A DNA stretch of 58,124 nucleotides from Macrostomum lignano (lineage: Eukaryota), in assembly GCA_002269645.1 (NCBI GenBank), contig NIVC01004146.1, positions 1-58,124 on the forward strand. The letters run 5' to 3'. Below the pieces are notes generated by a model. That model made no database searches, was not told where the DNA came from, and saw nothing but the letters and a program-made list of their open reading frames with translations. Numbering within the stretch: the first letter of the stretch is position 1; each line of letters opens with the position of its first letter. A program made the position numbers and the translations under genes. Shown here in pieces: positions 478-54,119 of the stretch.

Positions 478-3400
478 CTAAATCGGGAAACTAATTAATG
501 CGTCAAATGATCACACGCTGCTTATAAACTACTGACCAACAGTAGCAAGTGGTAAATAGTATAGGCAGAGAAAAATGCTGGCGAGACAATTGTCAGACGG
601 CCAGACACAGACAGGTAGAGGGGAGACACAGACAGGTAGAGGGGAGACACAGACAGGTAGAGGGGAGACACAGACAGGTAGAGGGGAGACACAGACAGGT
701 AGAGGGGAGACACAGACAGGTAAAGGGAGACACAGACAGGTAGAGGGGAGACACAGACAGGTAGAGTGGCGACACAGACAGGTAGAGTGAAGACAGACAG
801 GTAGAGGGGAGACACAGACAGGTAGAGGGGAGACACAGACAGGTAGAGGGGAGACACAGACAGGTAGAGGGGAGACAAAGACAGGTAGAGGGGAGACACA
901 GACAGGTAAAGGGGAGACACAGACAGGTAGAGGGGAGACACAGACAGGTAGAGTGGCGACACAGACAGGTAGAGTGAAGACAGACAGGTAGAGGGGAGAC
1001 ACAGGCAGGTAGAGGGAGACACAGACAGGTAGAGGGAGACACAGACAGGTAGAGTGGCGACACAGACAGGTAGAGGGGAGACACAGACAGGTAGAGGGAA
1101 GACAGACAGGTAGAGGGAAGACACAGACAGCTAGAGGGAAGACACAGACAGGTAGAGGGGAGACACAGACAGGTAGAGTGGCGACACAGACAGGTAGAGG
1201 GGAGACATAAACAGGTAGAGGGGAGGGGAGGATACACACAGTCTGACAGGGCAATGGCAGCAAGGATTGAATAGAAGCCGGGAGTTTCCTAATAAAATGC
1301 AAAGCCAGCAAAGTGAACCTTGAGCTGCTGCTGCTGCTGTTGCGCTGGCTGCTTTCCAGTTTCTGTTCTGTCCGAGTTGCTGTTCCATTGCAGGCTGACC
1401 ACCTGCAGTGCTAGACGCGAGCTGGGCGGAGAGTCGCGCTCGAGAATTCGACGAATGCAGGGTCTGGTTGATGGAGGAATAAGCAGTAATATCTTGGTTC
1501 ATTTTGTTGAGCCGAAATCGAATTTTTATCTTGTTCGAGCAAGACTCTGCTAATTTGTCCCTAAGTACGAATTGTGCGCTAATAACATTTTCAGCTTTCA
1601 GACAATTATAAAGCACAATAATAAAACTATAATTGATTACACCTGCCCTAAATGGGCAGATGTGCAACCACAGCTCAGCCTCAGATATTGCGCGGCGCAT
1701 CTGAAGGCTGCGTACGGCTGTTCAGTCCAAGGACCTGGGGGGGGGTCGCCACACACAGCCTCAATTACCCCAGCTAGTGCTGGCACCCATTTTACAGCTG
1801 GGTGAACTGAAGAAACGCAGAGTTTAGTGTCTTGCTAAAGGACACAAATCGTTCCGGTGAGATCAGGAATCGAACCCCGACCTTCAAGTCGTGAGTCCGA
1901 CGCTCCAACCACTGGCTACAGAGTGCAAGTAGTATACAATAAATATATGCCACAGGAGACAAAGTGCAACAGAGGTCAGTACATTGTACGTAGAAGTGTG
2001 TACGCGAGAGTGTGTTGCATCACCTTGGCAACAAAACTGAGTCTGTAAGATAGAATAGACCCCCTCGTACACACGCAGGAGCATTTTTATTGCTCTACCA
2101 TTTTGCGTCTTATAAGACAAACTACTCAGCGCAAAATGGTAGCAGAAGAAACACAGTAGACAGCCACATCTTTGCACACGCAGTAAATCTCTGCAGAGTA
2201 GAATGAAAATATTTGAGAACAGATGCATTCAAAGTACGCAACGCGCACCGCCTTTTAACAGCTTTCATGTCTCCAGCGCACAGAGCACAGAGCTATTCGA
2301 GTCTAACGGGGGTGTCGAGGGCATAAGAGACGGACTAACAATAGAGCTCAGAGCTTTCCAGAGCTACTCAACAAGGAGGGCTGGGCTGCAAGTGCGCTTG
2401 AGCAGAAGAGCAAGAGAAAGAGATAAAAATTCTTAAATCTTCATGCTTTTTCACCTGCTAACAAAGATAGAAGTTTAGAGTAAAGACTAAAGCCCAATAT
2501 CTGAGTAGTTGAAATCTGAGCTTAACAGAAGCTGACAGAAAACCTGCAGCTCACAGCTGAGGATGCCAGAAGTTCGTCGAATGACCTTGGCCGCTCGGCC
2601 GAAAAATCAAGTGGTTGTGAGTTACTAACTGTCTAACTGTTGGATACTTTACTAAAATGTTGCATTTTAACATTGGTTAATGACACCCAAAATATTTCAG
2701 TTCGGCGTGGTAGACAACACGCCCAAGCTGCAGTTGGACATGACCGACGAGAGGAGCGTAGAGAACCTATCCAGGGTGTGCCACTTTCTCATGCGAGAGG
2801 GCAAGGCGTGCTTGAGAAGCCTATTCGATTCCAAGCATCCAACGGACGAGCTAACGGAACACTTGGCCTCGCCGGACATTCACCGGACGCTGAGGCGACT
2901 TAAGATCAAAGACATGCTAACCGAAGACGACTGGCAGACGCTCTACCCGAAGGAGAAATCTTCCGTGTCCGCTGACAACTACGACCTGCGTCTGCTGCTC
3001 CTGTTAGTAAAATACACCTGCGATGTGACGAAGCCGCAGCCAAACGGCTGGATGGGAGATCCGGAACCTCGCGATGACAGCCAGGGCGCAGCGCTGCAAC
3101 GCCTACTGGGCATTCAACGCGAGCTCGCCTCGCTGCAGACCTTAAAGGCGAGCGCAGCTAACAGACTGTTTAGCCGCATTGCCGAGCAGCTCCAGCGACT
3201 GGGACACTCGGGTGCAGCAGACTGTATGAACGCATACAAGCAGGACACTAGCATGGACGAGACTGAATCGCGCTTCATTCTGGGCGAATTCCTCGTCTGG
3301 TACCGCCAAGAGGTCAGCCAGTTGAAGAGAGAAATCGAAAACCAAGAACGAAAGAAGAAGCGCGAAGAGATTCCTATTCTGCAGAAACGGCTCAAGACGC

Positions 3401-6400
3401 GCGATTTGGACACGTCGGAAACGAAAAAACGCCAGTCGGTTGTTGGAAAGGCGACGATGGACATGAGCGACAAGTCGCGCTGTCAGAGATGGGCTCATAT
3501 CAAAACTGGCATGGTATTAGCGGAGCGCCTCATTCTCGACAAGTACTACGAACAGTTGCTCAACGATGTAAAAGCGGACACAGTGGTTGAGCATCTGATG
3601 AACAAGGAGATTATTACCCAAGACGAGAGCACGGAAATATTTTCTACTCTGCGCAACAACGAGCAGATGTCGACGTTGATCGACTTTCTAGTGCCAAAAT
3701 CTGGCAATGTGTTGGATGAGTTCGTTGAATCGCTGAAACCCAAGAACGAACAGGTGTACCAGCAGATGCACCAGGACTACCAGGCCGCTAAGGCCGACAT
3801 CCTTGCTAATAAACCACGTAAGTATTTATAGTAATTAATAAATCCTCTTTTAAGAGTTGATCATAGGATTTTTCTGTTTCTTCTGTTTCTTCAGAGGGTC
3901 TGCCTTACTGTAACAACATTCTTCGAGAGCGGTACTCCACCGCGTACGCCAAATGGAATCCGATTCCATGGTACACTAAAGTTGAAACAGACATTGCCGA
4001 ATTCTACTGTCAACAGCAGCTGCTCAATTTGAATGGGTAAGTAGCAGGAAAACAGATCAGATCATTAAGCCAGACATAATTTTCAACTTTGATTTCTCAA
4101 TTTAAAATTGCAGAAAGTCAGTCAACGCCTTCCAAGTTTTTGATTATAAGGAAGGCGAAAAAGACCCGCATACAGTAGTCATTGAGGGTGACCCCGGAAC
4201 AGGGAAGAGTACGCTGGCTAAGTATATGGCCTACAAATGGTCTTTGGACGAAAACGTATTCGGACGGCCTTTCCAACTGCTAATCTTGCTTGATCTCAAA
4301 GTGACAGCGCCCACAGTGAAAGTGATGATGATGGAACAGCTTTTCGGAGGCGACTGCAAGCTGGCCGAACGCGAAATTTGGGAGGTGATGAACATGCACC
4401 AGGCGAGCACACTGCTCATCATAGATGGCTACGAAGACAATCTAAATGATGAGATGAAGAGTTTGCTATTTGAGAACATCATGCCGGAACTGCACATTCT
4501 GGTATTTAGTCAGACTAACTTTACAGTCAGACTGATGCACCGCTACCAGCGAAAGGTAATTCTGACCGGATTCGCCAAATCCCAGGCAGAGGAGTACGTT
4601 CAGAAGTACGTCAAACTAGCTAAGAAGCCGTGGGAACACTTTTCCTCGTTTCTAAACAAGCTAGTAGTGGCAAAAAAATCAACTGAGCTTCAAAAGCTGC
4701 TGGATGCAGCGAAAAAGTCGCAGGAGCCGCAGAGGCGACGCGGGTCGTCAGAATCGGCGACATCTGTGACCTCGGCAAAGCCCAGAGACGAGCGACCTTT
4801 GGAGAGGGAAAACACGGACAAAGTCAGCACAAAACTAAGCCGCAGCTCTAGCAAGGGTCAAGGAAACGATCAGCAGCAACAACAGGATTCAAACGGTGAA
4901 AATTCAAATCAAAGCAAAATAGCGTCCCTGCGACATTACTCACAGGTGCCTTTGTACTGTTCGTTCTTCTGCCTGCTGACCGACATGCGCATGAGTATTG
5001 ATCTGAACTCTCCGACAACAATTGTGGAACAGTTTGTCTCCTGCATCAAGTTGAAGCTGATCGAACGCGAAAAGGAGAGTCGCTTCGAAGCGAATCGCGC
5101 CTACGCAATGCTGTCCGAACGCGCTATGGACACCATAAAGAAAGGCAGCGCAACTTTCATTTTGGCCAAGGAGGACCACATGATGACTAAGTTCGGCCTG
5201 ATTCAACTGGCTACAAACCTCACCGCAGAGGATAACCAGCGCTACATGTTTGGCAATCGTCTTATTCAAGAGTATCTCGCCGCGAAAAATCTAGACACTA
5301 GTGGAACAGATGAAGCTAGCCGCTTCTTCCAGAACATGAGTATGACTCCGATCTCCTACAATGTTGTTGTGTTCTACTGCAGCATCCGCAAGTCGGACAA
5401 CGACACGCCGGCCACCCGGGAACTGTTTGCAAAGATACTGCAGTATAACAAACGGCGAGGCAAAGCGAGTCGCATGAAAATGCCAGCGGCTACGTCGCCA
5501 GAAGACAGTCAACTGGTCGAGGGCAAGATCATGGACTACCAGCTCAGTCTGGAATGCGTGGCGGTCATGGACATGGCCCGCAGAGATCTTGGCAAGAAAA
5601 TTGTTGAATCGCTGCCAGAGCGATTCACCGTGAAGCACGAGGGCATCATTCCGAGATTGTCGCTTACAGGCCTGTCCAAGATGATCAAGTTTAACCACAC
5701 GACCATCCAAGAGGTGGACTTGCGCCTAGATCTGCTAGCCAAAGAGACGCTTGAGGCATACAAAAGTCTGGCTACCGCAATGAAAACGAACGTTCACATC
5801 AAGACGCTCCGCATCTACTGGACAGAGAAGGATCTAATGGCAGACTTCCTTCAAACCGTGTGCTGTCCGGAGCCAGAGGACCCCGCCAATTCTACAGGCC
5901 AGATGGAAATCAGGCGTAAGAAGCCCGATCAGACCGGCTTTCATCTGAAGAATCTTGAGTGCATCGACGAGTCAGGAAAGAAGCTGGACCAGTTGTCGCC
6001 AAAAATGCTAAACAACATGCGCGAAGCCTGCTCGAACATGACTAAACTAGAAACGTTCGCATTTCAAAATTGTCACCACATGTCGCTGGTTGGAAGCATA
6101 ATAAAAAATTTGCCAACTAAATTTGCGGACAACCTGCGCATTCTAGACTTTTCTGGCTGCCAGATGAGCATAGTGGCATCGCAGGATCTCAACGGAAAGC
6201 TGATGGAGAGCAAGAGTCTAGAAGGCCTGATCTTGGCTAACCTCAAGATTGATGCGATGGCCTTTAACACTTTCATCGCCGCATTCTCTAGCAATCGGAC
6301 CATTGTCCTGCTGGATTTGAGCGGAATCCGCCTGGACAATGTCTGCTTCTTCTCTCTATCCGAAGCGCTGAAAATTAATAACAAGCTTGAGAAGCTATTC

Positions 6401-9400
6401 TTACGCCAGGTGCCAATGGACACGAGAGCTTGCAAAGAGGTGGCTAGAATTCTAAAGATTAATAAGATGCTGAAACTTCTCACGGTCACGCAGGAGATCG
6501 TCAGCGAGGAGGGTCGCCGGGTTCTGGGCGAGGAGAGCCAGACGGAGACGCGCAAGAATCGGGCGGTCGTGGACGGCATCGGGGTGGAGTATCGGCAGAG
6601 ACCGACGAACGAGAGGGCCAATACTAAGAGAAACCCGCTGTCAGTCAAGTGAGGAAACCATGGCCGATGATGAAGACGCATCCTAACTATTATTATCAAA
6701 TAACAGTGAATTTCAATAACTTTTTAAAAGTTGTGAATAGTTTTTGTTTAGCACTGCCCTCCTTCGTTAATACGGCCCACAAGAACTTTGTAACTGTTTG
6801 CACAGAACGAGAAATCCTAGAATTTAAGCGATATCTTACTGAGACAAAGATGATTTTTTCTAAAGTAAAAACTGTACGTAAAACATACAGTATTGTTTTA
6901 AGTTTATTTATTCTCTATAATAACATTAAGCTAAATGATACAATATAATTTTCAATTTTTTAACAGACAGCTTTGTAACAGACTAACAGGAAAAGTTCTT
7001 GTCAATTTTTCTAGAAAAAATATAAACAAGTGAATAATAGTTTTTACACTTGGTTGGTTTTAAATGAAAATTTAAGACAGTGGGTACTTTAAACAAGATG
7101 ATGATGAAGCGGCCCCAGTCGCTAAACACAGAATCCCAGCTCCAGTTCCATATAAGACCGATCGTCCTTCTCTCTTGCCGTAGAGGGAGAAGATTAATTT
7201 GCCTGTCGATAAGAAGCCGAGCGACGAAGTTTGGGGTTGCTATGGGGGGAGGGGGGGTTAATGAATCGAATGGAGGCAAAGTGTCAGACAGTAGTGAGAT
7301 AGATAGGACCCATTCAATCGCGGCATCGATAGCGCTCACACTTATACTGTAAGAACTATATAGATTCTATATTCGAAAGTCTTGAGCGCATTGGCAGTTT
7401 GATTAAAATGCCCATAGCTATAGAGGTTGAAGCCACCAAACTCGCGCTGTCCCATCTTATCGTTGGGAGGGGGAGCCATAAATGGGAAAGAAAGAGAGAG
7501 AGAGACCAACAGGAGCTAGATCGGATAGAGAGAGAGCGAGTGAGCAATTATAAGAAACTGGGGAATGTGAAGTTCCGAATGAGAATAAGGCGGAAATGAA
7601 TAGGCCAGAGGCAAATGGTGAGGGGTGATATATAGGGATTCTGAGCAGTATAGACTCAAATAGAATAGGAATGATAGAGATAGAAGAAAGTAAAATGCGG
7701 AGGCACCAAATTCCAGAGCTTCGACCGGTTCGAAGAGTTGATTGGTTGCAAAGAGGCACTGATTTATATACGAGCGTGTATATAATAATACATAGAAGGG
7801 AGAAGACTGCAGGGGCTTGGGATTGAATTTTGTTCGGTTTGCTTTTCAATGGGAGATAATGACAGTGCATAAGAATGAGGAGGTGGTTGGGAGAGGGCAA
7901 GGAGACTCAGAACTTGGACTGACAACTCTTATTCAAGCCTTACATTTTTGGACAACTATAAAACTTGATTGTAGCTTAGTGTCTTTTAACTTCTCTTTTA
8001 TTACTAGGTCGCATTTATATTGCTCAGAATGCAGTTAATTGTGTTTAAGGAATTAGCAATCTGCGCTCCTTCTGTTGGTGACGCAACAAAGAAAGGAATA
8101 ACAGTTTTGAGTAAACTATATGTAAGTAACTACATGTAAGTCTTTTTATATGCAAACCGACAGCTCAGCCGCAGCTATTTCGCGGCGCATTTGAAGGTTG
8201 CGTACGGCTGTTCAGTCCAAGGACTGGGGGGTCGCCACACACCCTCAATTACCCCAGCTAATGCTGGCAACCATTTTACAGCTGGGTGAACTGAAGCAAT
8301 GCAGAGTTAAGTGTCTTGCTCAAGGACGCAAATTGTTTCAGTGGGATCGGAAATCGAACCCCTGACCTTCAAATTGTGAGTCCGACGCTCTAACCACTAG
8401 GCTACAACAGCCGTAGTACAGTCAAGTCAGTATTGCTAATCTCTTCAGGAAAATGATGTTTAAAGGAAAGCAGCATCAGTCTTGAGAAACAGCTATCTAG
8501 CTGAAGATATGAGATTCCCTATGAGTTTTTTTGGCTCAAAACATCTGAGTAACCACCAAGAGCCACAGAATTTCAGCAATTCCCCCCAATGAGCCTTGAC
8601 ATCTCAGCATTTCCCACACGAACCTTGGCATGTCCCAATTACCACACTGTCATTTTAAAATGTTTTCTCTGTGTTTTTGGCATGATTTTCTACACACTTT
8701 AGTTCCTTATCTGAACCTTTCTGAATTTAGGGCAATGGGAATCACACTTTAGGGCAATGAGAATCACACTTTAGGGCAATGGGAATCACACTTTAGGGCA
8801 ATGAGAATCACACTTTAGGGCAATTAGAATCACACTTTAGGGCAATGAGAATCACACTTTAGGGCAATGGGAATCACACTTTAGGGCAATGAGAATCACA
8901 CTTTAGGGCAATGAGAATCACACTTTAGGGCAATGAGAATCATACTTTAGGGCAATGAGAATTACTTTATACTTAAAAGTTCAAACAAAATGACTCGAAA
9001 CAGTCAGAAACTCGCAGACTGGGATAGAGGAAGGTTCTTGTTTTTTGCGTTTTTATTTGTTTACTCAATCCTAGCACGCCAAGTTCTAGCTGTGGGCCTC
9101 CTTGACACGAGGGAGAAAGGGGAAGAAAAGGAAAAAAGGAAGGACGAGGTGCGTCAGTCGAAGGTACACACAGTCGAGCACGGGCGAATAAAATCGAAAG
9201 CTGGTGTGATAGGCCTTGAGACGCAGCCAACAAATGGCCTTTAATATTTTAGCATTGCGGCAGGAAAATCCGCTGTAATCTGACACCGGCAATACAGTTT
9301 ACAAACGAGAGCTGGCCAGCCCACTAAACCAGCTGTCGGATTTCCTCCGCAAAGATGAGCGACAATGAGGAACGAATCTGCCTCGTACCAAAAGACGACG

Positions 9401-12400
9401 ACGAATGGAAGCAGCAAAAGCCGACGGTGACACAAGGAGACACGATCGATGCTACCATAGTAGAGGAGGCTTCAACTTCTTCATCGACGGCTGCAGTCAC
9501 TACGGCACTGTCAGCAACAGCATCGGCACCATCGGCAGCCTCAAACAGCAGCAGCAGCAACAACAAGCGAAGGAGAAAGCTAAGAAGAGCCGGTACAGTT
9601 ATTGGTGGAAGCAAGAGATTTTCGAGCCATGGTGGCGGCGGGAGCGGCAGCGGCGGAGTGGCTGGAGGCAGACGGGTGCTGGCTAAGAAGGCCAGTCTGG
9701 TTGCTATCGCATCGTCCAAGAGGCACACAAGTAAAAAAGTGAGTAGATCGGAGGCCACAAGATGTTGCATCAAGCAGAGGGGGGGGGGGGTTGTAGCCTA
9801 CTGGTTAGGGGGTTCGATTCTTGACCCACCCAGAACAACTTGTGTCCTTGAGAAAGACACCTCAACTCTGCATTGCTTCAGTTCACCCAGCAGTAAAATG
9901 GGTGACAGCATTACCTGGGGTAATTGAGGGCTTGTGTGGCGATGGCAACCCCCAGATTTTAGACTCAACAGCCGCAAGCAGCCTTCAGATGCGCCACGCA
10001 ATAGCCAGTTGTACGAGCTACATCTGCCTATTAAGGCAGGTGTAGTAAAAAAGCTGTCAGTGAAGATGCTATGATAGTGGAGATGAGATCTCACTGGAGA
10101 TCAGATATTAGTAGATAACATGAGAAAGAAATAGGGTTAAGGTGAAGGTAAAGATTATACATCCGTGAATATAAGAGCTCAGTGGAGATTCAATATCAAT
10201 AAGGACGAGATTTCATTAGGGATGAAGGTTGAGATGTCAGTAGGGATAAGGGGATAAGTTCTCAATATGTCATTTCATCACTCGTAGGTAGCTGTAGCCG
10301 ACTGAAACTATAAATAATGATCAAATATGAATACAAGTCAATAAGATTGCAATCAAACAATTCTTTTTCAAAACTATCAATTGCTCGGCCGTATTAATTC
10401 CCCTATAGAACATTAGGGCGCCCAATTATGCTGAAGAAGAGATAAAGAAATTGACTATGAAAAAAGGATGGGAAACGCGCATATTTTTATTTGCATATAA
10501 CAACGCTTGTCCCCTAATTGCGATTGAAATTCAATTATCCAGTACTAAATTTTCTATTTTGAGTTATGGCACGCATTATAGCTATATTGGATTAGAAGAT
10601 AAGCAAATATATATTGGAATAAATTCGGCAAGGGGTGCTTAGGAAAATGAGTAGTGGTTGGGAGTACCAACTAGTTTTCTCCTCTATTCTCCGATTCCAA
10701 CAATCTATAGTGCGAAATGCCAAATTCAGTGTGTTAAGGAAATGATGACGGCTCGAGTTACGAGCCGGTTTCTGGAGAGGATTTAAAAAGCGCCAAACAG
10801 TCCTTCTCCCGTCAACTCACGTCTAGTTGGCAGATACCTGGGTACACGCAAGAGACACCCGCTGAGGACTTAGAGAACTCTTATTCAACTCGCATCAAAA
10901 CTTCTTACAGATATCGGATCATTTTAACAGCATCAACAAGCTGGCTCAGAAGAGGGCTCTGATGCGTTCGAAGCAAATTGACCAGCTGTTGCTGACTGAC
11001 CAGGAAGCCAAGCGCAAGGAGATTCACCTGCTGCTGATTGGTTTGTTTTTTACTCTAGTACAACACGACACACGTTAAAACAGTTTCTTTCTTAAACATC
11101 TAATAATTCCAAATACCTCGACGTCTTAAGTGTGTCTACCATATCCTGAAGTGTGTCTACCACAGCCTGAAGTGTGACTACCACAGCCTGAAGTGTGTCT
11201 AACATAGCATGAAGTGTGTCTACCACAGCCTGAAGTGTGTCTCTCGACAGACTAAAGTGTTTTTACCTCAGACTAAAGTGTCTCACGGCCTCTGTAGTGT
11301 CTCGACAGGATAAAATATGTCTAGTACAGTCTACAAGTGTGTCTATCAATCAAAGTGTGTCTCACCATAAAGTTTAAGTATATTATGCACTTAAAACGAT
11401 TACAGTATATATTAATATTATCCGTTGTTCAGCGCTATTCCGTTAGATTAATTTTTTAACTGCCGATTTTTTTTCAACAAAAACGTATATTAACGTTAAA
11501 TCCATGTTTCACTTTTTCACATTAACCTAGGCGGCAACGGATGCGGCAAGAGTACGTTAGTGAAACAGTTTCGAATTCACTACGGAGACGCATTCCCGGA
11601 CGAGCAACGCAAGGCGCTGATCGGTCAGGTGCTGGAGAATCTAGCAGATGCGGTGCACATTGTGCTGGAGAATATGCGCACTAGGGACATCTGGTTTCAC
11701 GATCCCTACATCAAGGTAGGAAGGTAGCGGTTTTTATTCTACATCAAAGTTTGATTGCAGCTGTTGTTGGTCAAAGGGACTGTTTCGAAATTCTAGAAAT
11801 TATCTATCAGAGGACTTGGGCCAGAAGGCTTTCGCTCGATTCCAGGCGTAGCTACATCAAATTTGAATCCACATATTGGGATATTTTTGCTCGACCCATG
11901 GCAGACAAAGTCGGGGCTGCAGTGCATCTTTAGTGCGCCCCTCATGTCTCTGTACTTGTGTAGCTTTGGCTTTAGGGAACCGCAAAAATTCAAGGGTTCA
12001 CTTCCTCAGTGCCAGGGTTTTGGAGTTGGTTTTCTTGAACAAGCCCCAGGCAAATATTCATACACCAGACCCGAATTCTGTGGCCCCGCATGGAATGCAA
12101 CTCACACGGAGATTTAAGACCATTGTTAATCGCGCACCCAACCAGGACATGGTTGAAGAATTCCAAGCCTACTGTCCGAAATTCAACAGTCTAATATTTC
12201 GCCACTCCGGCAAACAAGTGGACATTGAGAACAGCATTCACTACGCGCACGTTGATTTTGTGGACGACGATACGCTGGCATCGGCGCCGACTGACACTGA
12301 CCTGCCTAGCAGTTGCGGTCACGACAACGCGCATGAACTACTATTATTCGATGTTAGCTACCGAGAGGCCAGGCGAAACAACTTAGACTTGAACGGACTT

Positions 12401-15400
12401 GACGGACTGGCTTCGGGTGGGGACGGCAACGGAGGCGACACGGCGTCAGCTTCGTTAATAATCTATTATAATACGCAGGTGAGAAAGACGCGTCTCACCG
12501 GATGAGTCTTTTTGGAGCATCGTATTAAATAGATAAAGAATAAGAAGTCCACGAGGATTATAAAAAACCAGTTATTTTCTTCTTATCATGTTTTCTTCTA
12601 CATGTAAAATGAAGTCATTCTACAAGCGCACATTAAGATCTTAGTACATTTTGGTCCTCATAAATGTGAATTAATGTAACTATAAGGTCATTTCAAGCAT
12701 GTGAATGCACATTTTTGTCCTTGTTTAGCGCGGCCCGGCGCCTCTAAAGGCTGCGTACGGCTGTTCAGTCCAAGGACTGGCACCCATTTTACAGCTGGGT
12801 GAACTGCAGCAATGCAGAGTAAAGTGTCTTGCTCAAGGACACAAATTTAAACTCAAGGTCCTTTCTATCCGATATATAAAAACACCGCAGGGCCTCGAGG
12901 ACAGCCAGTCCGAAGCGGACGACCGAGACCGTGAGCGAGAGACGCACACGGCCAGGACCTACATTAGCAGTCTGGAATTTGGCAAATTCTCCAGACGTCA
13001 AAGACGCCAACAACTGCAAAACCTGAGCGGAGAGGATGCCGGACTGAACCAGCTGGACGATGGCAGCTCCGACAGCAGCTGCGCCAGGCTGGTTGAGCAC
13101 CTTCACCTAGGCGACGCGCACGACACCGACTCCTCGGGAGGTCGGCGCGCCTCGTCAACCCTGGACGGCTTGCCGCCTCACGACGAAATCGTGTTCTGCT
13201 TCGTGCGACACATAAAGAACTGCATTGTGCAGCCGGAGTTCGAATTGTGCCTCGCTGATCACGAGTACTTCAAGCCGGAGATTACCTACGCCGAGATGTA
13301 GTGAGTTACTTCGTTTCTTTTTTGAGGGTCTGACCGACAGTCTAGCTGTCCTCTTGATTGTTAATCTGTTTTTTTATATTCAATAGTGACTAGTTCAGTA
13401 GGGCAGCGATTCTCATTGCCCTAAAGTGTGATTCTCATTGCCCTAAAGTGTGATTCTCATTGCCCTAAAGTGTGATTCTCATTGCCCTAAAGTGTGATTC
13501 TCATTGCCCTAAAGTGTGATTCTCATTGCCCTAAAGTGTGATTCTCATTGCCCTAAAGTGTGATTCTCATTGTCCTAAAGTGTGATTCTCATTGCCCTAA
13601 AGTGTGATTCTCATTGCCCTAAAGTGTCATTCTCATTGCCCTAAAGTGTGATTCTCATTGCCCTAAAGTGTCATTCTCATTGCCCTAAAGTGTCATTCTC
13701 ATTGCCCTAAAGTGTGATTCTCATTGCCCTAAAGTGTGATTCTCATTGCCCTAAAGTGTGATTCTCATTGCCCTAAAGTGTGATTCTCATTGCCCTAAAG
13801 TGTGATTCTCATTGCCCTAAAGTGTGATTCTCATTGTCCTAAAGTGTGATTCTCATTGCCCTAAAGTGTGATTCTCATTGCCCTAAAGTGTCATTCTCAT
13901 TGCCCTAAAGTGTGATTCTCATTGCCCTAAAGTGTGATTCTCATTGCCCTAAAGTGTGATTCTCATTGCCCTAAAGTGTGATTCTCATTGCCATAAAGTG
14001 TGATTCTCATTGCCCTAAAGTGTGATTCTCATTGCCCTAAAGTGTGATTCTCATTGCCATAAAGTGTGATTCTCATTGCCCTAAAGTGTGATTCTCATTG
14101 CTATAAAGTGTGATTCTCATTGCCCTAAAGTGTGATTCTCATTGCCCTAAAGTGTCATTCTCATTGCCCTAAAGTGTGATTCTCATTGCCCTAAAGTGTG
14201 ATTCTCATTGCCCTAAAGGGTGATTCTCATTGCCCTAAAGTGTGATTCTCATTGTCATAAAGTGTGATTCTCATTGCCCTAAAGTGTGATTCTCATTGTC
14301 ATAAAGTGTGATTCTCATTGCCCTAAAGTGTGATTCTCATTGCCCTAAAGGGTGATTCTCATTGCCATAAAATGTAATTCTCATTGCCCTAAAGGGTGAT
14401 TCAACATCAGTCTGATTACAGTTTTCAAGTTAGCGACAATTTTAACTTAAAACACTAAAAACTTACTAAAATGTTTAAGGCTCTGTAAAATAAAGATCAC
14501 CAATCTAAATAAATCTACAGCTTTATACAACACGTGGATCGCGTCATTCAAGAGGACTATGTGCCAACGCTGCAAGATATTTTGGCCATTCGCAAGCCGA
14601 GCGACGCAGTCAGACAGACCGAATTTCAAATTGCTGGCACCACTTTTCGGTGAGCTTAAAGCGGATGCAGAATGTTCTGTGTCTACTTTCCTGTCGCTTC
14701 TGTGTCCACCTCTTTGTACTCGCTTTGTCCACCTCCCTGTCGCTGTAGTGTCCACCTCTTTGCATCCGCTGTGTCCACCTCTCTGTCGCTGTTATGTCCA
14801 TCTTCCTGTCACTGTTGTGTCCATCTTCCTGTCACTGTTGTGTCCATCTTCCTGTCACTGTTGTGTTCATCTTCCTGTCGCTGTTATGTCCATCTTCCTG
14901 TCACTGTTGTGTTCATCTTCCTGTCGCTGTTATGTCCATCTTCCTGTCACTGTTGTGTTCATCTTCCTGTCGCTGTTATGTCCATCTTCCTGTCACTGTT
15001 GTGTCCATCTTCCTGTCGCTGTGTGTGTCCACCTCTCTGTCGCTGTTATGTCAATCTTCCTGTCGCTGTTATGTCCATCTTCCTGTCACTGTTGTGTCCA
15101 TCTTCCTGTCACTGTTGTGTCCATCTTCCTGTCACTGTTGTGTCCATCTTCCTGTCACTGTTGTGTTCATCTTCCTGTCGCTGTGTGTTTCTACCTCTCT
15201 GTCGCTGTTATGTCCATCTTCCTGTCACTGTGTGTGTCCAGCTCTCTGTCGCTGTGTGTGTCCAGCTCTCTGTCGCTGTGTGTGTCCAGCTCTCTGTCGC
15301 TGTTGTGTCCATTTCCCGGTCGCTGTTGAGTCCACCTTTTTGCATCCGCTGTGTCCACCTCCCAGCCTCCAATGTGTCTATTTCCCTAAATTCCCTAAAT

Positions 15401-18400
15401 TCAACTCCCTAAAATGTTTTGTGTCCACCTCCTTGAATCTGAATCATCTGTGTACACCCCCTGTCTATCTGTGTACACCCCCTGTCTGTGTACACCCCCT
15501 ATCTGTGTACACCCCTGTCTATCTGTGTACACCCCCTGTCTATCTGTGTACATCCCTGTCTATCTGTGTACACCCCCTGTCTATCTGTGTACACCCCCTG
15601 TCTATCTGTGTACACCCCTGTCTATCTGTGTACACCTCCTGTCTATCTGTGTACACCCCTATCTGTGTACACCCCCTGTCTATCTGTGTACACCCCCTGT
15701 CTGTGTACACCCCCTATCTGTGTAAAACCCCTGTCTATCTGTGTACACCTCCTGTCTATCTGTGTACATCCCTGTCTATCTGTGTACACCCCCTGTCTAT
15801 CTGTGTACACCCCCTGTCTATCTGTGTACACCCCTGTCTATCTGTGTACACCTCCTGTCTATCTGTGTACACCCCTATCTGTGCGCACCCCCTGTCTATC
15901 TGTGTCCGACCTCCTTGGCTTTTTCATCACATCTGGATATCATCAGCCAAGTCAATCAATTTATCTGCAATAAAAATCCGCCCAATTTTCATTCAAAACG
16001 ACAGCATGATCGATCTGGCAGGCCAGAGAAGCCAGCGGCACAAGTGGATTCACTATTTCGAAGACGTCAACGCAGTGCTATTCGTCAGCTCTCTGTCTGG
16101 CTTCGGCGAGCTTGTCGAAGAGGAGGACAGAACGGTGAGAAACCACGCACGTCTTTCTAAATCATTAATCATCATAAATCATGTCATAAACAGACAATCC
16201 ATCCGTACATTCTCCAGACAATTAAAATGTCCGACTGTCTATCAACATTCAGCGAGATCATCAGCAACAAGTACCTGTGGAAGAAGGATTTCTTTCTGTT
16301 CTTAAACAAATTGGACGTGTTCGAGCAGAAGTTGAAGTCCAAGAGTATTACAGGACTGTTTCCGGACTATCGAGGTGAGATTTTTCAGAGAAATCGCCCC
16401 TGGTTATCCAAGCAAATCACCCTGATTATCCATCAAAATCGCCCTGATTATCCATCAAAATCGCCCTGATTATCCATCAAAATCGCCCTGATTATCCAAG
16501 CAAATCGCCTTGATTAACCAGGAAAATCGACCTGATTATCCATCAAAATCGCCCCGATTATCCATCAAAATCGCCCTCATTATCCATCAAAATCGCCCTG
16601 ATTATCCATCAAAATCGCCCTCATTATCCATCAAAATCGCCCTGATTATCCATCAAAATCGCCCTGATTATCCAAGAAAATCGCCCTAATTATCAAGAAA
16701 ATCGCCCTGGCTATCGAAGAAAATCGCCCTGATTATCCAAGAAAATCGCCCTGATTTTCCAACGAAATCTCCCACATTATCCAACGAAATCGCCATTTTT
16801 TTCTTGAAAATCGCTCCGATTATCCAAGAAAATTACCCTGATTATTCAAGAAAATCACCCTGATTATCCAAGAAAATTGCCCTGATTATCTGAAAAAATC
16901 GCCCCTAATATAGATAACAACGAACAAACAGAATCGAGACATCAAGTTTGATCCTCCTCAATCGTCCTCAATCTCCAGGCCACGACGAGGTGAACCAGTG
17001 CGCGCAGTACATCAAGGAGAAGTTCACCAGCCTCATACCGAAGAACATGCCAAAGTCCAAGAGAATCTACACGCACCTCATCACGGCCATAGACATTGAC
17101 AGCATGAAGCCCCTGTTCAAAGAAGTGCTGCATCGAATCGCTGAGGCGAACTTGAAGAAGAGCATCACGATTTTTTAGTCTAGCTTGCAAATTCTATGAA
17201 CTAAACAGTCAAATTACTAACTTATGTACTTTTGTCACCAAAGGGATCAAACAGGCTTATTATACGCAACAGTACCTTGCACCTTGCAAATCAAATTGTT
17301 GCGACTTTGTATAAATGTAACTAAACACTAATAAATACATAGATACTGACACAAACAAACAATCGATTGACACAAACCATTACTCTTAATAACACAAATC
17401 ATTACTCTACTGACACAAATCATTACTTTACTGACACAAATCATTACTTTACTGACACAAATCATTACTTTACTGACATAATTATTACTTTACTGACACA
17501 AATCATAAACCTACTGACACAAATAATTACTCTACTGACACAAATCATTAATCTACTGACACAATTTATAAACCTACTGGCACAAATCATTAATCTACTG
17601 ACAGAAATCATTAATCTACTGGCACAAATCATAAACCTACTGACACAAATCATTAATCTACTGGCACAAATCATAAACCTACTGACAGAAATCATTAATC
17701 TATTGACACAAATTATTAATCTACTGACACAAGTTATTAATCTACTGACACAAATCATAAACCTACTGACACAAATCATTAATCTACTGACACAAATCAT
17801 TAATCTACTGACACAAGTGATTAATCTACTGACACAAGTTATTAATCTACTGACACAAATCATTAATCTACTGACACAAATCATTAATCTACTGACACAA
17901 GTGATTAATCTACTGACACAAGTTATTAATCTACTGACACAAGTTATTAATCTACTGACACAAATCATAAATCTACTGACACAAATCATAAACCTACTAA
18001 CACAAATCATTAATCTACTGACACAAGTTATTAATCTACTGACACAAATCATAAACCTACTGACACAAATCATTAATCTACTGACACAAATCATTAATCT
18101 ACTGACACAAGTGATTAATCTACTGACACAAGTTATTAATCTACTGACACAAATCATTAATCTACTGACACAAATCATTAATCTACTGACACAAGTTATT
18201 AATCTACTGACACAAATCATTAATCTACTGACACAAATCATTAATCTACTGACACAAGTTATTAATCTACTGACACAAGTGATTAATCTACTGACACAAG
18301 TTATTAATCTACTGACACAAATCATAAATCTACTGACACAAATCATAAACCTACTGACACAAATCATTAATCTACTGACACAAGTTATTAATCTACTGAC

Positions 18401-21400
18401 ACAAATTTTAAATCTGCTCACACAATATAAGAAGCGGTCAATCCCACATAAGCAAGACAACAACAGGATCCACTAGTTAAAGCACTCACCGGTGTCCTAA
18501 AACGAACTCTCTATCATAGCGATACCTCAGCTGGTGCAGCAGATGTTCCGGGCTGAAATAATTCACCCCAAAATCTTCATCGGGCGAAGCTGCGCCTCTG
18601 GCCGACATTCGCCACACCAGCAACCGGTAATGATTGCGAAGCCAAGCCTCTGTGAGGGCCGGGGCTCGAATCCCAGGCTGAGAGCGCAACTTCGTGAGCA
18701 GCTCCGACCAACCCGTACCGTCAGAGAAACGAAAATCGCCGGCCAATTCAAAATCCATGGTCGGCTGGAGACCGGCGGAGTCGGGAATCGGGGAGGCAGA
18801 CAGGCTGACTCGCTCGCCCGATGCGGCAAGGCGGAGTCTGGCCAGGCTGAGTTCGCCGAGGCCCTTCTCCGTGGCCTGCTAAGGGGGCGCAAAAACATGA
18901 TTGAACTGCATTCACCTTTGACGGACGTCTGCGCTGCTCGACAGCTTTGTTAGCAGGAAAAATTTTATGTTTAAGTTTGAGGCAGACCGACCCAGCAACT
19001 GAGGATCTGGGAGGCTGGTGGGCCATCAAGTGAGGATCTGGGAGGCTGGCCCAGCAACTGAGGATCTGAGAATGGAGGCCCAGCAACTAGGGACCTGGGA
19101 GGGTTGCCCAGCAACTGGGGATCTGAGGGGCTGGCCCAGCAACTGTGGATCTGAGAATGGAGGCCCAGCAACTGTGGATCTGAGAATGGGGGCCCAGCAA
19201 CTGTGGATCTGAGAATGGGGGCCCAGCAACTGAGGACCTGAGAATGGGGGCCCAGCAACTGTGGATCTGAGAATGGAGGCCCAGCAACTGTGGATCTGAG
19301 AATGGGGGCCCAGCAACTGTGGATCTGAGAATGGGGGCCCAGCAACTGAGGACCTGAGAATGGGGGCCCAGCAACTGTGGATCTGAGAATGGGGGCCCAG
19401 CAAATGTGGATCTGAGAATGGGGGCCCAGCAACTGTGGATCTAAGAATGGGGGCCCAGCAATTGGGGATCTAAGAATGGGGGCCCAGCAACTGGGGATCT
19501 GAGGGGCTGGCCCAGCAACTGGGGATCTGAGGGGCTGGCCCAGCAACTGAGGACCTGAGAATGGAGGCCCAGCAACTGTGGATCTGAGAATGGGGGCCCA
19601 GCAACTGTGGATCTGAGAATGGGGGCCCAGCAACTGGGGATCTGAGAATGGGGGCCCAGCAACTGTGGATCTGAAAATGGAGGCCCAGCAATTGGGGACC
19701 TGAGAATGGGGGCCCAGCAACTGTGGATCTGAGAATGGGGGCCCAGCAACTGTGGATCTGAGAATGGGGGCCCAGCAACTGTGGATCTGAGAATGGGGGC
19801 CCAGCAACTGTGGATCTAAGAATGGGGGCCCAGCAATTGGGGATCTAAGAATGGGGGCCCAGCAACTGGGGATCTGAGGGGCTGGCCCAGCAACTGGGGA
19901 TCTGAGGGGCTGGCCCAGCAACTGTGGATCTGAGAATGGGGGCCCAGCAACTGAGGACCTGAGAATGGAGGCCCAGCAACTGGGGATCTGAGAATGGGGG
20001 CCCAGCAACTGTGGATCTGAGAATGGGGGCCCAGCAACTGGGGATCTGAGAATGGGGGCCCAGCAACTGTGGATCTGAAAATGGAGGCCCAGCAATTGGG
20101 GACCTGAGAATGGAGGCCCAGCAATTGGGGATCTGAGAATGGAGGCCCAGCAACACAGAATCTGTAACCCGCAGTTCACACAAACCGCAGCAGCAGTCGG
20201 AGCAGTCGGAGTCTGCGGCTGCAACTGTCGCCGAGGAGCAGCGGCAGGCGAGGGCGCGGGCTTGAACCGGTAGAACGCACCCTTAGTAGCCGGAGTCGCC
20301 GAAGACGCCGAAGCAGCCCCACCTACTGGCGTGTTCAGCCGAGGCGTCCGATGCTGCACCAGCATGGGGGTGGTCCGTGGCCTCGGCATCTGCTGTCTGG
20401 GAGTGGACATGGAATTCGGAGTCTGCGGACTTGGTTGAGCAGCTTTGGTCGAAGGATTTGCCGGAGCGGAATCCTCATTCTCAGCGGCCGCAGCCAGGGC
20501 TTTGGCCCGAGCCATGGCGCTGGCCGAGACCTGCACAGTTCGACCGCCCGCTGTGGAGAAGCCGCCGCCAGCCCCGCCACTAGAAGTACTTGGAGCTGTG
20601 GCAGCCGAGCTGCATCTGGGACTGTCTTTATCGGCTTCATCAAGCAGTTTCTGTGCTCGCTTCAACGCCGAAGCTGAAACGCCAACCGAACGACCGCCTG
20701 CGGTGGAGAAGCCGGCCGGACCCTGATTGACAGGCCTGTTGTTACTAACGGGTTCCAGTTCCGCGTCCTCGGCTAGCTGCCGCGCCTTACGCAGAGCGGA
20801 CGTCGATACTTGCAAAGATTTACCACCGGCGGTTGAAAACCCACCCTTCATATCGACGCTTTCTGGCGACAATTTCCTACCAGATTCGGCAAGATTCTCG
20901 TTGCTCCGATGGTTGGCCGCCTCATCCTCCAATTGTTTGGCTTTTCGCATGGCCTCAGCTGAGAAGCTGACCAATCTGCCTGAGGCTGTACAGAACCCAG
21001 CAGGATTTTTCAAAGCACTGTTCACACCGCTGGAAGGTTTACCAATGTTACTTCGCAGCCAGCTAGTGTCCTCGTCCTCCTCTTCGAGGTCTTTGTCTCT
21101 AAGATCTTTATCCGTTAGGTCTTTGTCCCTAAGATCATTATCCGTTAAGTCTTTGTCCCTGTCCAGCCTAGCTGCACTTTCAGCCAGCACATTCTGTGTA
21201 AAGTTCAAGCTGCAGTCGGCTAGAAGAGCCTCGACGCCTTCTTTCACGTCGCGAATTTGCGTAGCAGTCAAATCGCCGTAATCCATTTCGCCTACTGAGT
21301 TCGAGTCGGTTGCTGCTAGCTTATTTTGTGCTTCGTCTGTCAGCCGGACAGGTGGAACTGGGTCAGGACAGTTGCTACGCGGCTCTGGTGGGCTGGTGCG

Positions 21401-23597: not shown

Positions 23598-24715
23598 AAA
23601 GCTTCAAGCTTGAGAAGTTTTGAGCTTGAGAGTTTTGAGCTTAAGAGTTTTGAGCTTGAGAATGTTTAGAGCTTGAGAGATTTTGAGCTTGAGAAGGTTT
23701 TGGGCTTGAGAAGGTTTTAAGCTTGAGAAACTTCGAGCTTGAGAAGTTTTGAGCTTGTGAAGCTTCGAGCCTGAGAAGTTTTGAGCTTGAGAAGTTTTGA
23801 GCTTGAGAAAGTTTTGAACTTGAGGTTTTGAGCTTGAGAAGTTTTGAGCATGAGAAGGTTTGAACTTGAGAAGGTTTTGAACTTGAGGTTTTGAGCATGA
23901 GGTTTTGAGCATGAGAAGGTTTTGAGCATGAGAAGGTTTGAGCTTGAGAAGGTTTTGAACTTGAGGTTTTGAGCATGAGAAGGTTTTGAGCATGAGAAGG
24001 TTTGAGCTTGAGGTTTTGAACTTGAGGTTTTGAGCTTGAGAAGTTTTGAGCTTGAGAAGTTTTGAGCTTGAGAAAGTTTTGAACTTGAGGTTTTGAGCTT
24101 GAGAAGTTTTGAGCATGAGAAGGTTTGAACTTGAGAAGGTTTTGAACTTGAGGTTTTGAGCATGAGGTTTTGAGCATGAGAAGGTTTTGAGCATGAGAAG
24201 GTTTGAGCTTGAGAAGGTTTTGAACTTGAGGTTTTGAGCATGAGAAGGTTTTGAGCATGAGAAGGTTTGAGCTTGAGGTTTTGAACTTGAGGTTTTGAGC
24301 TTGAGAAGTTTTGAGCTAGAGAAGTTTTGAGCTTGAGAAGTTTTGAGCTAGAGAAGTTTTGAGCTTGAGAAGTTTGAACTCGTAAAGCTTTGAGCTTGAG
24401 AAGTTTGAACTCGTAAAGCTTTGAGCTTGAGAGTTCAGAGCTTGAGAAGGTTTTGAGCTTGATAAGTTTTGAACTCGAGAAGCTTCGAGCTTGATAAGTT
24501 TTGAGCTTGTGAAGCTTCAAGCTTGAGAAGTTTTGAGCTTGTGAAGCTTCGAGCTTGAGAAGTTTTGAGCTTAAGAAGGAGGTTTTGAGCTTGAGAAGTT
24601 TAGACCTTGAGAAGGAGGTTTTGAGCTTGAGAAGTTTTGAGATTGCGAAGCTTCGAGCTTGAGAAGTTTTAAGCTTGAGAAGATTTTGAGCTCGAAAAAT
24701 TTTGAGCTTGAGAAA
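23598..24715. repeat. Complex ~17-18-bp satellite (TTTTGAGCTTGAGAAG-type) between CEP85-like and BRCA2
   Basis: Variable-length units with repeated higher-order blocks. Confidence 0.93.
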
Positions 24716-25312
24716 TTTAAAAACCCTTAAAATCGTTTAAATTTATTCATATCCTACACACCAGCTTTATTATAAAAATTTCAAAATTTCATAAATAAAT
24801 AAAAACGCTATGACAAAGCAGCGAACAAAAAAGAAATTTGAAATCAGCGACAGAAACACAGTGCTTTATTTGCTACTTTATGTCAATAGACAATTAATTG
24901 ACTGATTTGGTGTATTGATTGATTTGCGCTAGACTTTATCAGGCAAAATGAAGTCTAGCGCTACAGACACTGTAATAGTAACATTGGTAGTATTGGAATG
25001 GATGCAGTATTCTTTGTAAAACTGTGAATAATTTTATTTAATTTACCTGACTTCGAAGTTCATTTTTAGGACGGCAATAAATCATAAACTAGCAGCCAAG
25101 TCTCAGACAGGAGGGTGCTAATTAAATATGAAATACGCACGCGACCGGCACATTTTAAAAGCGAATTGAGAAGAGCATGCGGCTCTGTACTACGCAGCAG
25201 TTACTACTGAAATACTGAGGCGCTCAGTAAGTAGCATATGTACAGAGCAAAACGTTAATAAAAACTGCTATATTACAGCAGCAGCAGGAGCACTAACTTC
25301 TGATGCGATAAA

Positions 25313-29751: not shown

Positions 29752-30490
29752 CTGACATCCCTGAAACCTGACATCCTTGAAAACTGACGTCCCTGAAACC
29801 TGACATCCCTGAAACCTGACATCCTTGAAACCTGACATCCTTGAAATCTGACATCTATGAAGCCTGACATCCCTGAAACCTGACATCCTTGAAACCTGAC
29901 ATCCCTGAAACCTGACATCCTTGAAACCTGACATCCTTGAAATCTGACATCTATGAAGCCTGACATCCCTGAAACCTGACATCCTTGAAACCTGACACCC
30001 TTGAAATCTGATAACCTTGAAATCTGACATCCTTGAAACCTGACATCCTTGAAAACTGACATCCTTGAAACCTGACGTCCCTGAAACCTGACATTCTTGA
30101 AATTTGACATTCTTGAAATTTGACATCCTTGAAACTGACATCCCTGAAATCTGACATCCTTGAAACCTGACATCCTTGAAACCTGACATCCTTGAAACCT
30201 GACATCCTTGAAACCTGACATCCTTGAAACCTGACATCCTTGAAACCTGACATCCTTGAAACCTGACATCCCTGAAACCTGACATTCTTGAAATTTGACA
30301 TTCTTGAAATTTGACATCCTTGAAACTGACATCCCTGAAATCTGACATCCTTGAAACCGGACATCCTTGAAACCTGACATCCTTGAAACCTGACATCCTT
30401 GAAACCTGACATCCTTGAAATCTGACATCCTTGAAACCTGACATCCCTGAAATCTGACATCCTTGAAACCTGACATCCGTTTAAAACTGA
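29752..30490. repeat. 16-bp minisatellite (CTGACATCCTTGAAAC)x~46, upstream of the first recognised CEP85-like exon
   Basis: Tandem periodicity with duplicated variant blocks. Confidence 0.96.
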
Positions 30491-41275: not shown

Positions 41276-41301
41276 CGTGACACGATTCTAGTAAACTTCA
41301 C

Positions 41302-42754: not shown

Positions 42755-43016
42755 ACAGAAGAGCAGGAGGAATCAATATTTGAGCTCTGAAAAAAAGTTT
42801 CCTAAATCTGTAAAAACTTTGAGGCAAAACTGTGTTTCAACTGCATAAGAAGAGTAATTGAACCGTCAGCTTCTCCATCCCTCATGGATTAACCAATCAG
42901 ATAAGAGCGGAATATCTGTGCATCCAGTAACTGCACTGTGAAGCTATAAATCAAGGACTTGTGAGTGGATGCCAAGTTTAACCGCCTAAAAATCTGAGTT
43001 CTAAATAGCTTCAACA

Positions 43017-54090: not shown

Positions 54091-54119
54091 TAAATAGTTG
54101 CCGACTTTAGAATAGCAAG

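Follow-up and report, generated by a model that had tools for sequence, protein, structure and literature searches.

The G protein alpha-a (G-alpha-a) subunit of the snail Lymnaea stagnalis was reportedly cloned by Knol et al. in 1995 and presented in J Biol Chem as a novel subunit with atypical guanine nucleotide-binding domains. We know of no studies of G-alpha-a biochemistry, partners or physiology since that cloning, and a literature search found no biochemical study of any member of its family. Here we analyzed a 58,124 nt stretch of DNA from Macrostomum lignano (contig NIVC01004146.1 of assembly GCA_002269645.1; hereafter the window), which carries on its forward strand a gene for a G protein alpha (G-alpha) subunit. 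Sequence comparisons indicated that the gene is very probably a member of the G-alpha-a family and that it has the non-canonical phosphate-binding loop (P-loop) found family-wide. We regard it as a new spiralian member, divergent to an unusual degree, of a known family and not as a new kind of system. The family was noticed earlier by de Mendoza et al. 2014 (PMC3971589), including in Nematostella vectensis and Lottia gigantea, and their description fits the taxa found in this study. Orthologs of Lymnaea G-alpha-a include Terebratalia G alpha 12a, Lottia LOTGIDRAFT_188884 and Nematostella A7RLH8.

Another natural metazoan G-alpha in which Gly42 and Glu43 (human Gi-alpha-1 numbering, used throughout) are both replaced is Gz-alpha (GNAZ), whose loop is GTSNSGKST. 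Hydrolysis of GTP by Gz is reportedly about 200-fold slower than by Gi, a finding attributed to Casey et al. in 1990, and this makes Gz the established precedent for a slow-hydrolyzing subunit. Gz differs, however, in being a vertebrate retrogene in the Gi class, in keeping Thr182-Gly183, DVGGQ, Arg242 and an MGC lipidation site, and in being sensitive to regulator of G protein signaling (RGS) proteins (RGSZ/RGS20); the comparison with it is one of function and not of homologous states. Further comparisons come from engineered forms of Gi1 and Go. The G42V substitution in Gi1 strongly reduces GTPase activity via displacement of Gln204, while G42R has a wild-type kcat yet shows no binding of RGS domains and no active switch conformation (PMC3285607). 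In Ras, a proline is tolerated at position 12, the G12P form not being GTPase-deficient (PMC3285607). The preliminary description of this locus, which was made from the DNA sequence alone, was therefore right that substitutions at Gly42 are known to impair hydrolysis or switch closure. What a substitution at position 42 does depends on which side chain it brings and on the residues around it. The engineered proteins have single changes in a canonical pocket, whereas the window protein also differs at Glu43, Gly202, Arg242, Thr182 and Gly183, so the effects of G42V and G42R are not directly transferable to it.

The P-loop of the window protein, G-G-N-G-C-G-K-S-T, is produced by the splicing of base 11040 to positions 11531-11556. 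The upstream exon ends at 11040 (ATTG|gtttgt), the AG acceptor lies at 11529-11530 (cctag|GC), and positions 11531-11560 read gc ggc aac gga tgc ggc aag agt acg tta g, with the codon for Asn42, AAC, at 11536-11538. The joined exons read H-L-L-L-I-G-G-N-G-C-G-K-S-T-L-V-K-Q-F-R-I-H-Y-G-D-A-F-P. When aligned to human Gi-alpha-1, Gly40 and Gly45-Lys46-Ser47-Thr48 are kept, and four consecutive residues differ (Ala41 to Gly, Gly42 to Asn, Glu43 to Gly and Ser44 to Cys). The loop fits the Walker-A pattern GxxxxGK[ST] and departs from the canonical form G[ATSP]GESGKST with its Gly42 and Glu43. These results bear out the preliminary description, which had read GGNGCGKST at 11531-11560 and placed Asn at the equivalent of Gly42 (Ras Gly12) and Gly at that of Glu43. 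Its statement that the sequence GAGESGKST is near-invariant among G-alpha proteins was overstated, as GAGESGK was found in 114 of 221 P-loops from G-alphas outside the family and human Gz has GTSNSGKST. No alternative, duplicated or mutually exclusive P-loop exon was found within the window, the exon at 11531-11715 being the sole P-loop exon of the gene.

The G-alpha gene model has nine exons that form one reading frame of 694 codons, free of frameshifts and internal stops, and all of its introns are GT-AG. A 549-residue core of the predicted protein matched the Pfam G-alpha profile (PF00503) with an E-value of 3.8e-78 and 263 bits (cut-off 48.8), in two stretches split by an insert, and a chance match is therefore of no concern. 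Among solved structures, the best matches (165-173 bits) were to Go, Gz, Gi and Gq. An AATAAA signal is present at 17330, approximately 150 nt 3' of the stop codon. We consider the gene to be real and apparently intact.

The exon borders of the model were compared with those of relatives by fetching the genomic loci of Opisthorchis felineus and of the mussel Potamilus streckersoni and mapping their proteins onto them. In both species the Gly40 codon is split after its first base, which closes the first coding exon (...GTTG|gt in Opisthorchis and ...CTAG|gt in Potamilus), and its remaining two bases open the next exon directly ahead of the loop, exactly as in the window gene. The preliminary description had named the 11040/11531 junction as the point at which its reading could fail, and the junction was upheld by this phase-1 intron splitting the matching Gly codon in the two other species. 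All seven core intron positions are common to the three genes, including one that splits a Tyr codon ahead of switch I. The window gene differs from the other two in having an extra intron inside the helical-domain insert and an extra predicted 5' exon. Four of its exons, of 185, 129, 130 and 157 nt, agree in size with the seven-exon layout described for GNAQ-type genes (Lokits et al. 2018).

A search with the full 549-residue model was swamped by low-complexity candidates and returned only distant matches, and a trimmed core was used next. The first true relative identified with the trimmed core was a G-alpha of Mactra antiquata, with 43% identity and the loop GGACCGKST, and the same search gave trematode proteins with the loop GPPNAGKNT and a matching long helical-domain insert. 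We then searched 1.84 billion cluster representatives exhaustively with a profile, and ran a named profile search as well, with single-exon translations aligned to two database relatives as the query. The nearest sequences included the Lymnaea stagnalis "G protein alpha-a subunit" and a Terebratalia "G protein subunit alpha 12a". Members of the family were found in many gastropods and bivalves, one cephalopod, Lingula, the nemertean Lineus, the annelids Owenia and Paralvinella, Branchiostoma, the hemichordates Ptychodera and Glandiceps, the cnidarians Nematostella, Exaiptasia and Actinostola, and in trematodes and cestodes. The family was absent from the vertebrate and insect sequences sampled, while being present from cnidarians to amphioxus. 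Family members scored 340-550 bits against the family profile, compared to 324 bits or less for Gi/o, and the window protein scored 210-308 bits against family members and no more than 205 bits against canonical G-alphas. Two unusual architectures were also seen in the course of these analyses: proteins of the chytrid Kappamyces spp. with two or three complete tandem G-alpha domains, each having a GSSDSGKST loop, and an unnamed protein of 2766 residues in which 17 stretches match the G-alpha profile.

Phylogenetic analysis with neighbor-joining (NJ), using references for the five classical classes from the supplement of Rawlinson et al. 2019, recovered the G-alpha-a family as monophyletic in 100/100 bootstraps, apart from Gi/o/t/z, Gq, G12/13, Gs and Gv. 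The window protein and the proteins of the parasitic flatworms (Neodermata) were sisters, also in 100/100. Long-branch attraction was considered as a cause of the family membership and rejected, as the placement held without the flatworm sequences: the window protein then fell within the family in 97/100 bootstraps and within its spiralian part in 82/100, nearest to Lineus (45.7% identity). Unicellular-holozoan sequences adjoined the family in 89/100, and they too agree with the description by de Mendoza et al. The sequence relationships date the family back at least to the cnidarian-bilaterian ancestor and mark it as distinct from Gs, Gi/o, Gq, G12/13 and Gv.

Assignments to other classes were also considered. 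G12/13 was suggested by the name of the Terebratalia sequence and was rejected, as GNA12/13 group with Gq far from the family and are 26-28% identical to the window protein. The Terebratalia transversa protein itself (M9V136 / AGJ70286), named "G protein subunit alpha 12a" and filed as Ga12 in a published table, is a G-alpha-a member. Gv has a similar taxon spread and was likewise rejected, since the Tribolium Gv has GAGESGKST and an MGAC N-terminus and groups beside Gi/o in a tree that samples two Gv-like sequences. Assignment to Gz did not fit either, human GNAZ lying within Gi/o in the tree.

To place the window loop in context, the 60 loops of family members and 221 from other G-alphas (281 fetched P-loops) were compared. 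In the family, position 41 is Gly in 25 loops, Ser in 19, Leu in 10, Pro in five and Ala in one; position 42 is Ala in 30, Pro in 19, Gly in six, Ser in four and Thr in one; position 43 is Gly in 31, Asn in 14, Cys and Gln in four each, Tyr and Ser in three each, Asp in one and Glu in none; and position 44 is Ser in 42, Ala in 13, Cys and Val in two each and Thr in one. The commonest loop, GGAGSGKST, is the typical bilaterian form. Outside the family, Gly42 was present in 193/221 loops and Glu43 in 172/221, the exceptions including human Gz and many fungal and protist proteins. As to conservation in related species, the non-canonical character of the loop is family-wide, but Asn42 itself occurs in none of the 281 loops. 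What the preliminary description missed is that, to judge from these alignments, the non-canonical loop was inherited across an ancient family and is no peculiarity of the window gene.

The loop is not the only part of the pocket that is altered in the family. Switch I has the form IR.PT(L/V)GV, with Thr182 replaced; switch II has the form DVAGQ (DxAGQ), with Gly202 changed to Ala as in Ras Ala59; and helix alpha-3 has the form N(S/N/C)L.DSL, with Arg242 lost and position 242 being Ser, Asn or Cys in most members. Gln stands in place of Lys before LLxLG, the N-terminus is basic, and neither MG/Gly2 nor an N-terminal Cys cluster was found in any member. The loop is followed by a family signature, KQ(L/F)R(I/L)(H/N)YGD(G/A)FP, which the window protein carries as KQFRIHYGDAFP. 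From these comparisons, loss of the canonical Gly42-Glu43 pair is ancestral to the family, with most of the pocket having changed alongside it. As Glu43, Gly202, Arg242 and Thr182 are all altered, extrapolating from Gi1 single mutants is unsafe.

The window protein shares with Lymnaea G-alpha-a its clade, the run GxxxxGKST-x3-KQxR(I/L)HYGDxFP, the absence of Glu43 and Arg242, DxAGQ, the lack of an MG/Cys lipidation N-terminus and the seven-intron plan. Nevertheless, family members are only 36-46% identical to it. Its loop has GGNGC where Lymnaea-type proteins have GG(A/P)G(S/A), it has Ser181 and has Asp-Ala instead of (L/V)-Gly at 182-183, its G5 box has TAID instead of SCA(T/I)D, and it adds an insert of approximately 216 residues and a predicted N-terminal extension of approximately 130 residues. 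The features specific to the window protein are Asn42, Cys44, Ser181, Asp-Ala at 182-183, Lys242, TAID in G5, the sequence of about 216 residues inserted in the helical domain and the predicted extension.

Relative to human Gi-alpha-1, the window protein retains Arg178, Asp200, Gly203, Gln204, Trp211, Asn269-Lys270-x-Asp272 and Ala326. These include the built-in arginine finger Arg178 (ILAIR) and the catalytic Gln204 (DLAGQ), and the G4 and G5 boxes conform to NKxD and (T/S)(C/T)A as NKLD and ITAID, respectively. Changes were observed in switch I (Thr181 to Ser, Thr182 to Asp and Gly183 to Ala), in switch II (Gly202 to Ala) and in helix alpha-3 (Asn241 to Ile and Arg242 to Lys). The preliminary description had correctly reported the retention of the Arg, the Gln and NKxD and the replacement of the switch I Thr by Ser (KPS). 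It had also listed the G5 sequence ITAID among the departures; the motif is present but is not abnormal, as human G12 has TTAID. The region of switch II that contacts G-beta, QRSQRHKWIHYFE, is near the canonical QRSERKKWIHCFE. No N-terminal myristoylation or palmitoylation site was found, either at the predicted start MSDNEE or at a shorter alternative, MRSKQ. The helical-domain insert is acidic and Ser/Gly-rich, with 71% disorder-promoting residues compared to 56% in the core. The residues expected to bind phosphate, Mg2+ and guanine and to act in catalysis are thus all present in the protein, and we infer that it would bind and hydrolyze GTP and couple to G-beta-gamma and to receptors.

The nearest relatives of the window protein are those of the parasitic flatworms (among them Opisthorchis felineus CRM22_002084, Fasciola hepatica D915_002867, and proteins of Schistosoma and Trichobilharzia; 620-780 residues). 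The window protein and the trematode and cestode members have in common a large insert between (A)EEFQ and QPEF(Q/E) flanks, and with the flatworm members it shares the switch I sequence R.PS.AVR and the motifs HYFE, LNKLD and A.D.D.MK. All trematode members, however, have GKNT, in which Ser47 is replaced by Asn, and a disrupted DxxGQ motif (DLGLQ, DLAEQ or NLGEQ/H/Y). Substitution of this Ser by Asn is the classical dominant-negative change in Ras-like GTPases. The parasite proteins also have Pro42-Asn43 and an altered Trp211 region, whereas the window protein keeps the Mg-binding and catalytic residues. By sequence, the parasitic-flatworm members look like naturally inactivated G-alphas or pseudo-GTPases. 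Since the window protein keeps its catalytic residues and its branch in the NJ tree is far shorter than those of the parasites, it is either a less derived relative of the flatworm copies or an intermediate.

The preliminary description had predicted a subunit that binds GTP and is slow to hydrolyze it or insensitive to RGS proteins, an interpretation that our analysis supports in part. Slow hydrolysis and RGS insensitivity are both plausible. In the mechanism we propose, the window protein would bind guanine nucleotide and still work as a switch, and the side chain of Asn42 would crowd Gln204 and the gamma-phosphate, slowing intrinsic hydrolysis. A slowing effect of Asn42 is probable because G42V loses most GTPase activity and Gz, with Ser42-Asn43, is slow. 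In structures of Gi1, Glu43 has two partners, Arg178 (over the nucleotide) and Arg242, and the absence of Glu43 may loosen the retention of GDP. Asp182-Ala183 in switch I would remove the surface that classical RGS domains contact. Thr182 is the residue buried in the pocket of RGS4, and a Gly183 to Ser change in Gi/Go is, reportedly from the work of Lan et al. in 1998, the standard RGS-insensitive mutation. The paired changes of Thr182 to Asp and Gly183 to Ala, which the preliminary description overlooked, are the best argument from sequence that the protein may be RGS-insensitive. The sum of these steps would be a long-lived GTP state that is not shortened by RGS proteins. Our confidence in this kinetic mechanism is limited, and we put it forward as a tentative proposal that could well prove wrong; the family identity and the mechanism together make up the explanation that we narrowly favor.

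Several points weigh against this explanation. The phylogeny is neighbor-joining only, on 339 well-occupied columns with 100 bootstraps, and Gv is sampled in it by only two sequences. Exon 1, the 5' border of exon 4 and the inclusion of the insert exons 4 and 5 are predictions only, although the loop is unaffected by them. The wild-type kcat of G42R indicates that a side chain at position 42 is, on its own, no predictor of slow hydrolysis, and Gly43 and other co-varying changes may make room for Asn42. As Ras tolerates Pro12 and Pro42 is found in 19 of the 60 family members, the pocket may have been re-tuned and yet be efficient. Lastly, the parasitic-flatworm relatives have lost Ser47 and Gly203, and the lineage may therefore be leaving GTPase function.

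The re-tuned pocket leads to an alternative in which the protein is a kinetically ordinary switch, its co-evolved pocket (Gly43, Ala202 and no Arg242) having removed the need for Gly at position 42 and giving normal G-alpha rates, perhaps with a dedicated GTPase-activating protein. Position 42 is freely variable in the family (Ala, Pro, Gly, Ser, Thr and Asn), as might be expected in this case, while Arg178, Gln204, NKxD and the loop Lys-Ser/Thr have been conserved for more than 600 Myr in the non-parasitic members, which suggests selection on catalysis and not a crippled enzyme. The wild-type kcat of Go G42R and the GTPase competence of Ras G12P (PMC3285607) are also in its favor. Against this, G42V and the natural Gz show that small changes here usually slow hydrolysis, and Asn, although beta-unbranched, is polar and adjoins the gamma-phosphate and Gln204. 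We consider an ordinary switch to be unlikely but a serious competitor to the slow, RGS-insensitive switch.

The flatworm relatives raise a different prospect, that the protein binds and even hydrolyzes GTP without reaching an active conformation and stays on G-beta-gamma, or that it is becoming a nucleotide-independent scaffold. The trematode sister group, with its GKNT and with DLGLQ, DLAEQ or NLGEQ/H/Y in place of DxxGQ, fits such a course, as do the PS.AVR switch I, HYFE and large helical-domain insert that the window protein shares with it, and G42R provides a precedent in blocking both the active conformation and RGS binding (PMC3285607). However, the window protein retains Ser47, Gly203, Gln204, Arg178, Trp211 and NKLD on a much shorter branch than those of the parasites, and we find a non-switching protein improbable, though a real rival. 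Still less credible, to the extent that we give it hardly any weight, is that the unusual loop is an artifact, whether because the gene is a pseudogene, because its splicing was modeled wrongly or because the Asn codon stems from an error in sequencing or assembly. It is true that the gene sits antisense inside a BRCA2-like gene, in surroundings dense with minisatellites, and that the helical-domain exons are poorly conserved. Yet the nine exons contain no frameshift or in-frame stop, all introns are GT-AG, the core intron positions and phases, the conserved fold and the catalytic residues are preserved, and a polyadenylation signal follows the stop by approximately 150 nt. In addition, two substitutions separate AAC (Asn) from GGN (Gly) or GCN (Ala).

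A broader proposition would make G-alpha-a a sixth ancient holozoan/metazoan class that is non-lipidated and has a re-wired, more Ras-like pocket (Gly43, Ala202 and neither the Glu43-Arg178 nor the Arg242 contacts), acting as a self-activating switch with fast exchange and slow hydrolysis, independent of RGS proteins, and would make the window protein an intermediate on the way to a pseudo-GTPase. We regard this as doubtful. If it were true, the flatworm lineage would record a stepwise turn into a pseudo-GTPase, with the window protein (Asn42, Asp182-Ala183 and catalytic residues present) as the intermediate.

The individual exons of the gene all lie on the forward strand. The putative first coding exon (9354..9738) encodes a predicted N-terminal extension of 128 residues (MSDNEE...KRHTSKK) that is Ser/Ala/Gly-rich with polybasic stretches and is predicted to have no Gly2 myristoylation site. 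Its assignment as the first coding exon is inferred from an ATG in an open frame of 199 codons and a perfect phase-0 donor (AAA|gtgagt) at 9739, and a motif within it, RRVLAKKASLVAI, resembles KRVKKTLSLSAV and KRVRKTFSLSNM of the N-termini of bivalve and gastropod family members. Exon 2 (10911..11040; acceptor ttacag|ATA, donor ATTG|gtttgt) encodes the N-terminal helix and strand beta-1 (...KLAQKRALMRSKQIDQLLLTDQEAKRKEIHLLLI and the first base of Gly40), and the similarity to relatives reaches upstream of its internal ATG at 10962. It is followed by the phase-1 intron at 11041..11530 (GT...AG), which splits the Gly40 codon just 5' of the P-loop. Exon 3 (11531..11715, 185 nt) carries the P-loop, the family signature LVKQFRIHYGDAFP, in common with the 60 family loops, and helix alpha-A, and spans 61 codons, equal to exon 2 of the relatives.

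The helical domain is encoded by the next two exons. Exon 4 (12119..12478) begins with the conserved DMVEEFQ, of which EEFQ aligns with AEEFQ of Mactra and AEEL of Opisthorchis, and continues into the lineage-specific acidic, Ser-rich insert. It lies in an open frame of 212 codons (expected by chance at approximately 4e-5) with a phase-0 acceptor and the donor CAG|gtgaga, and its 5' border may be 12146 instead of 12119. Exon 5 (12891..13300), in a 190-codon frame, encodes the remainder of the insert and then the conserved ...VQPEFELCLADHEYFKPEITYAEM and two bases of a Tyr codon (donor TA|gtgagt); its end aligns with Opisthorchis EQPEFQEAMQRRTFLTPPIVYADF|Y, in which the Tyr codon is split identically. 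The following exon (14521..14649, 129 nt) encodes linker 2 and switch I (YVPTLQDILAIRKPSDAVRQTEF) and matches the Opisthorchis and Potamilus genes in size and borders. Conserved borders were also found for the exons encoding switch II (MIDLAGQRSQRHKWIHYFEDV; 16005..16134, 130 nt) and helix alpha-3 with the G4 box (TIKMSDCLSTF and FLNKLD; 16218..16374, 157 nt). The last exon (16979..17178) encodes the G5 box (HLITAID) and the C-terminal helix and ends in ...LKKSITIF and a TAG stop.

A BRCA2-like gene with BRC repeats, a helical domain and OB1, as identified with Pfam, lies on the reverse strand at 1-477, 18489-18878 and 18974-21634, enclosing 2671-17178. On the forward strand, 2671-3828 encodes a DZIP3-type HEPN domain and a CARD, and 4106-6649 a NACHT NTPase (P-loop GDPGTGKST); as read, these are two separate open frames, and their domain content corresponds to an NLR-like architecture of innate-immunity or death-domain type. 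As the G-alpha and the HEPN_DZIP3-CARD-NACHT genes are antisense between the helical-domain and OB1 exons of BRCA2, they are nested in its intron or introns. Minisatellites fill much of the window and nearly every intron of the G-alpha gene (13408-14402, 14688-15338, 15446-15905 and 16391-16904), and Tandem Repeats Finder identified one of 21 bp period at 11128-11281 in the intron adjacent to the P-loop exon. Others are located at 17344-18425, 603-1225, 18991-20154, 21911-22716, 23607-24718, 26216-27194, 29752-30493, 31179-32535, 33041-33857 and 40741-41283. The repeat period is 21-23 bp within the G-alpha introns and 15-48 bp in other places, the copies match at 80-96%, and several of the arrays yield long spurious open frames in all three phases.

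Farther along the window, an exon for the C-terminal half of Arp2/3 complex subunit 5 (p16-Arc, E=3.8e-21) is present on the reverse strand at 32738-32986. Two overlapping forward frames, at 43005-43556 and 43471-44658, correspond to the N-terminal and C-terminal portions of an amiloride-sensitive sodium channel (ASC/DEG/ENaC) and probably form a single gene interrupted by a short intron or a frameshift. A tandem array of approximately 6 kb at 48099-54106 (periods 15/34/49, unit TGGATGGTTGCTGAC) has a marked strand asymmetry, with a GC skew of approximately +0.45 to +0.48 and an AT skew of approximately -0.35 to -0.39. It directly adjoins the helicase open reading frame of a Helitron-like element on the reverse strand (54123-57784), in which Helitron_like_N/Rep (56674-57381) is followed by a PIF1-type helicase (54123-56024).

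Taken by itself, the window gene adds only modestly, as one more, unusually divergent member of its family. Textbooks and most reviews, however, describe four or five G-alpha classes in which GAGESGKST is essentially fixed, and G-alpha-a is a widely conserved, under-appreciated additional family without the Gly-Glu pair. If its members are long-lived in the GTP state or RGS-independent, they would provide a natural test of the roles of Gly42 and Glu43, and would represent a new mode of signaling in the biology of invertebrate G protein-coupled receptors, including those of the parasitic flatworms, in which the family has further degenerated.

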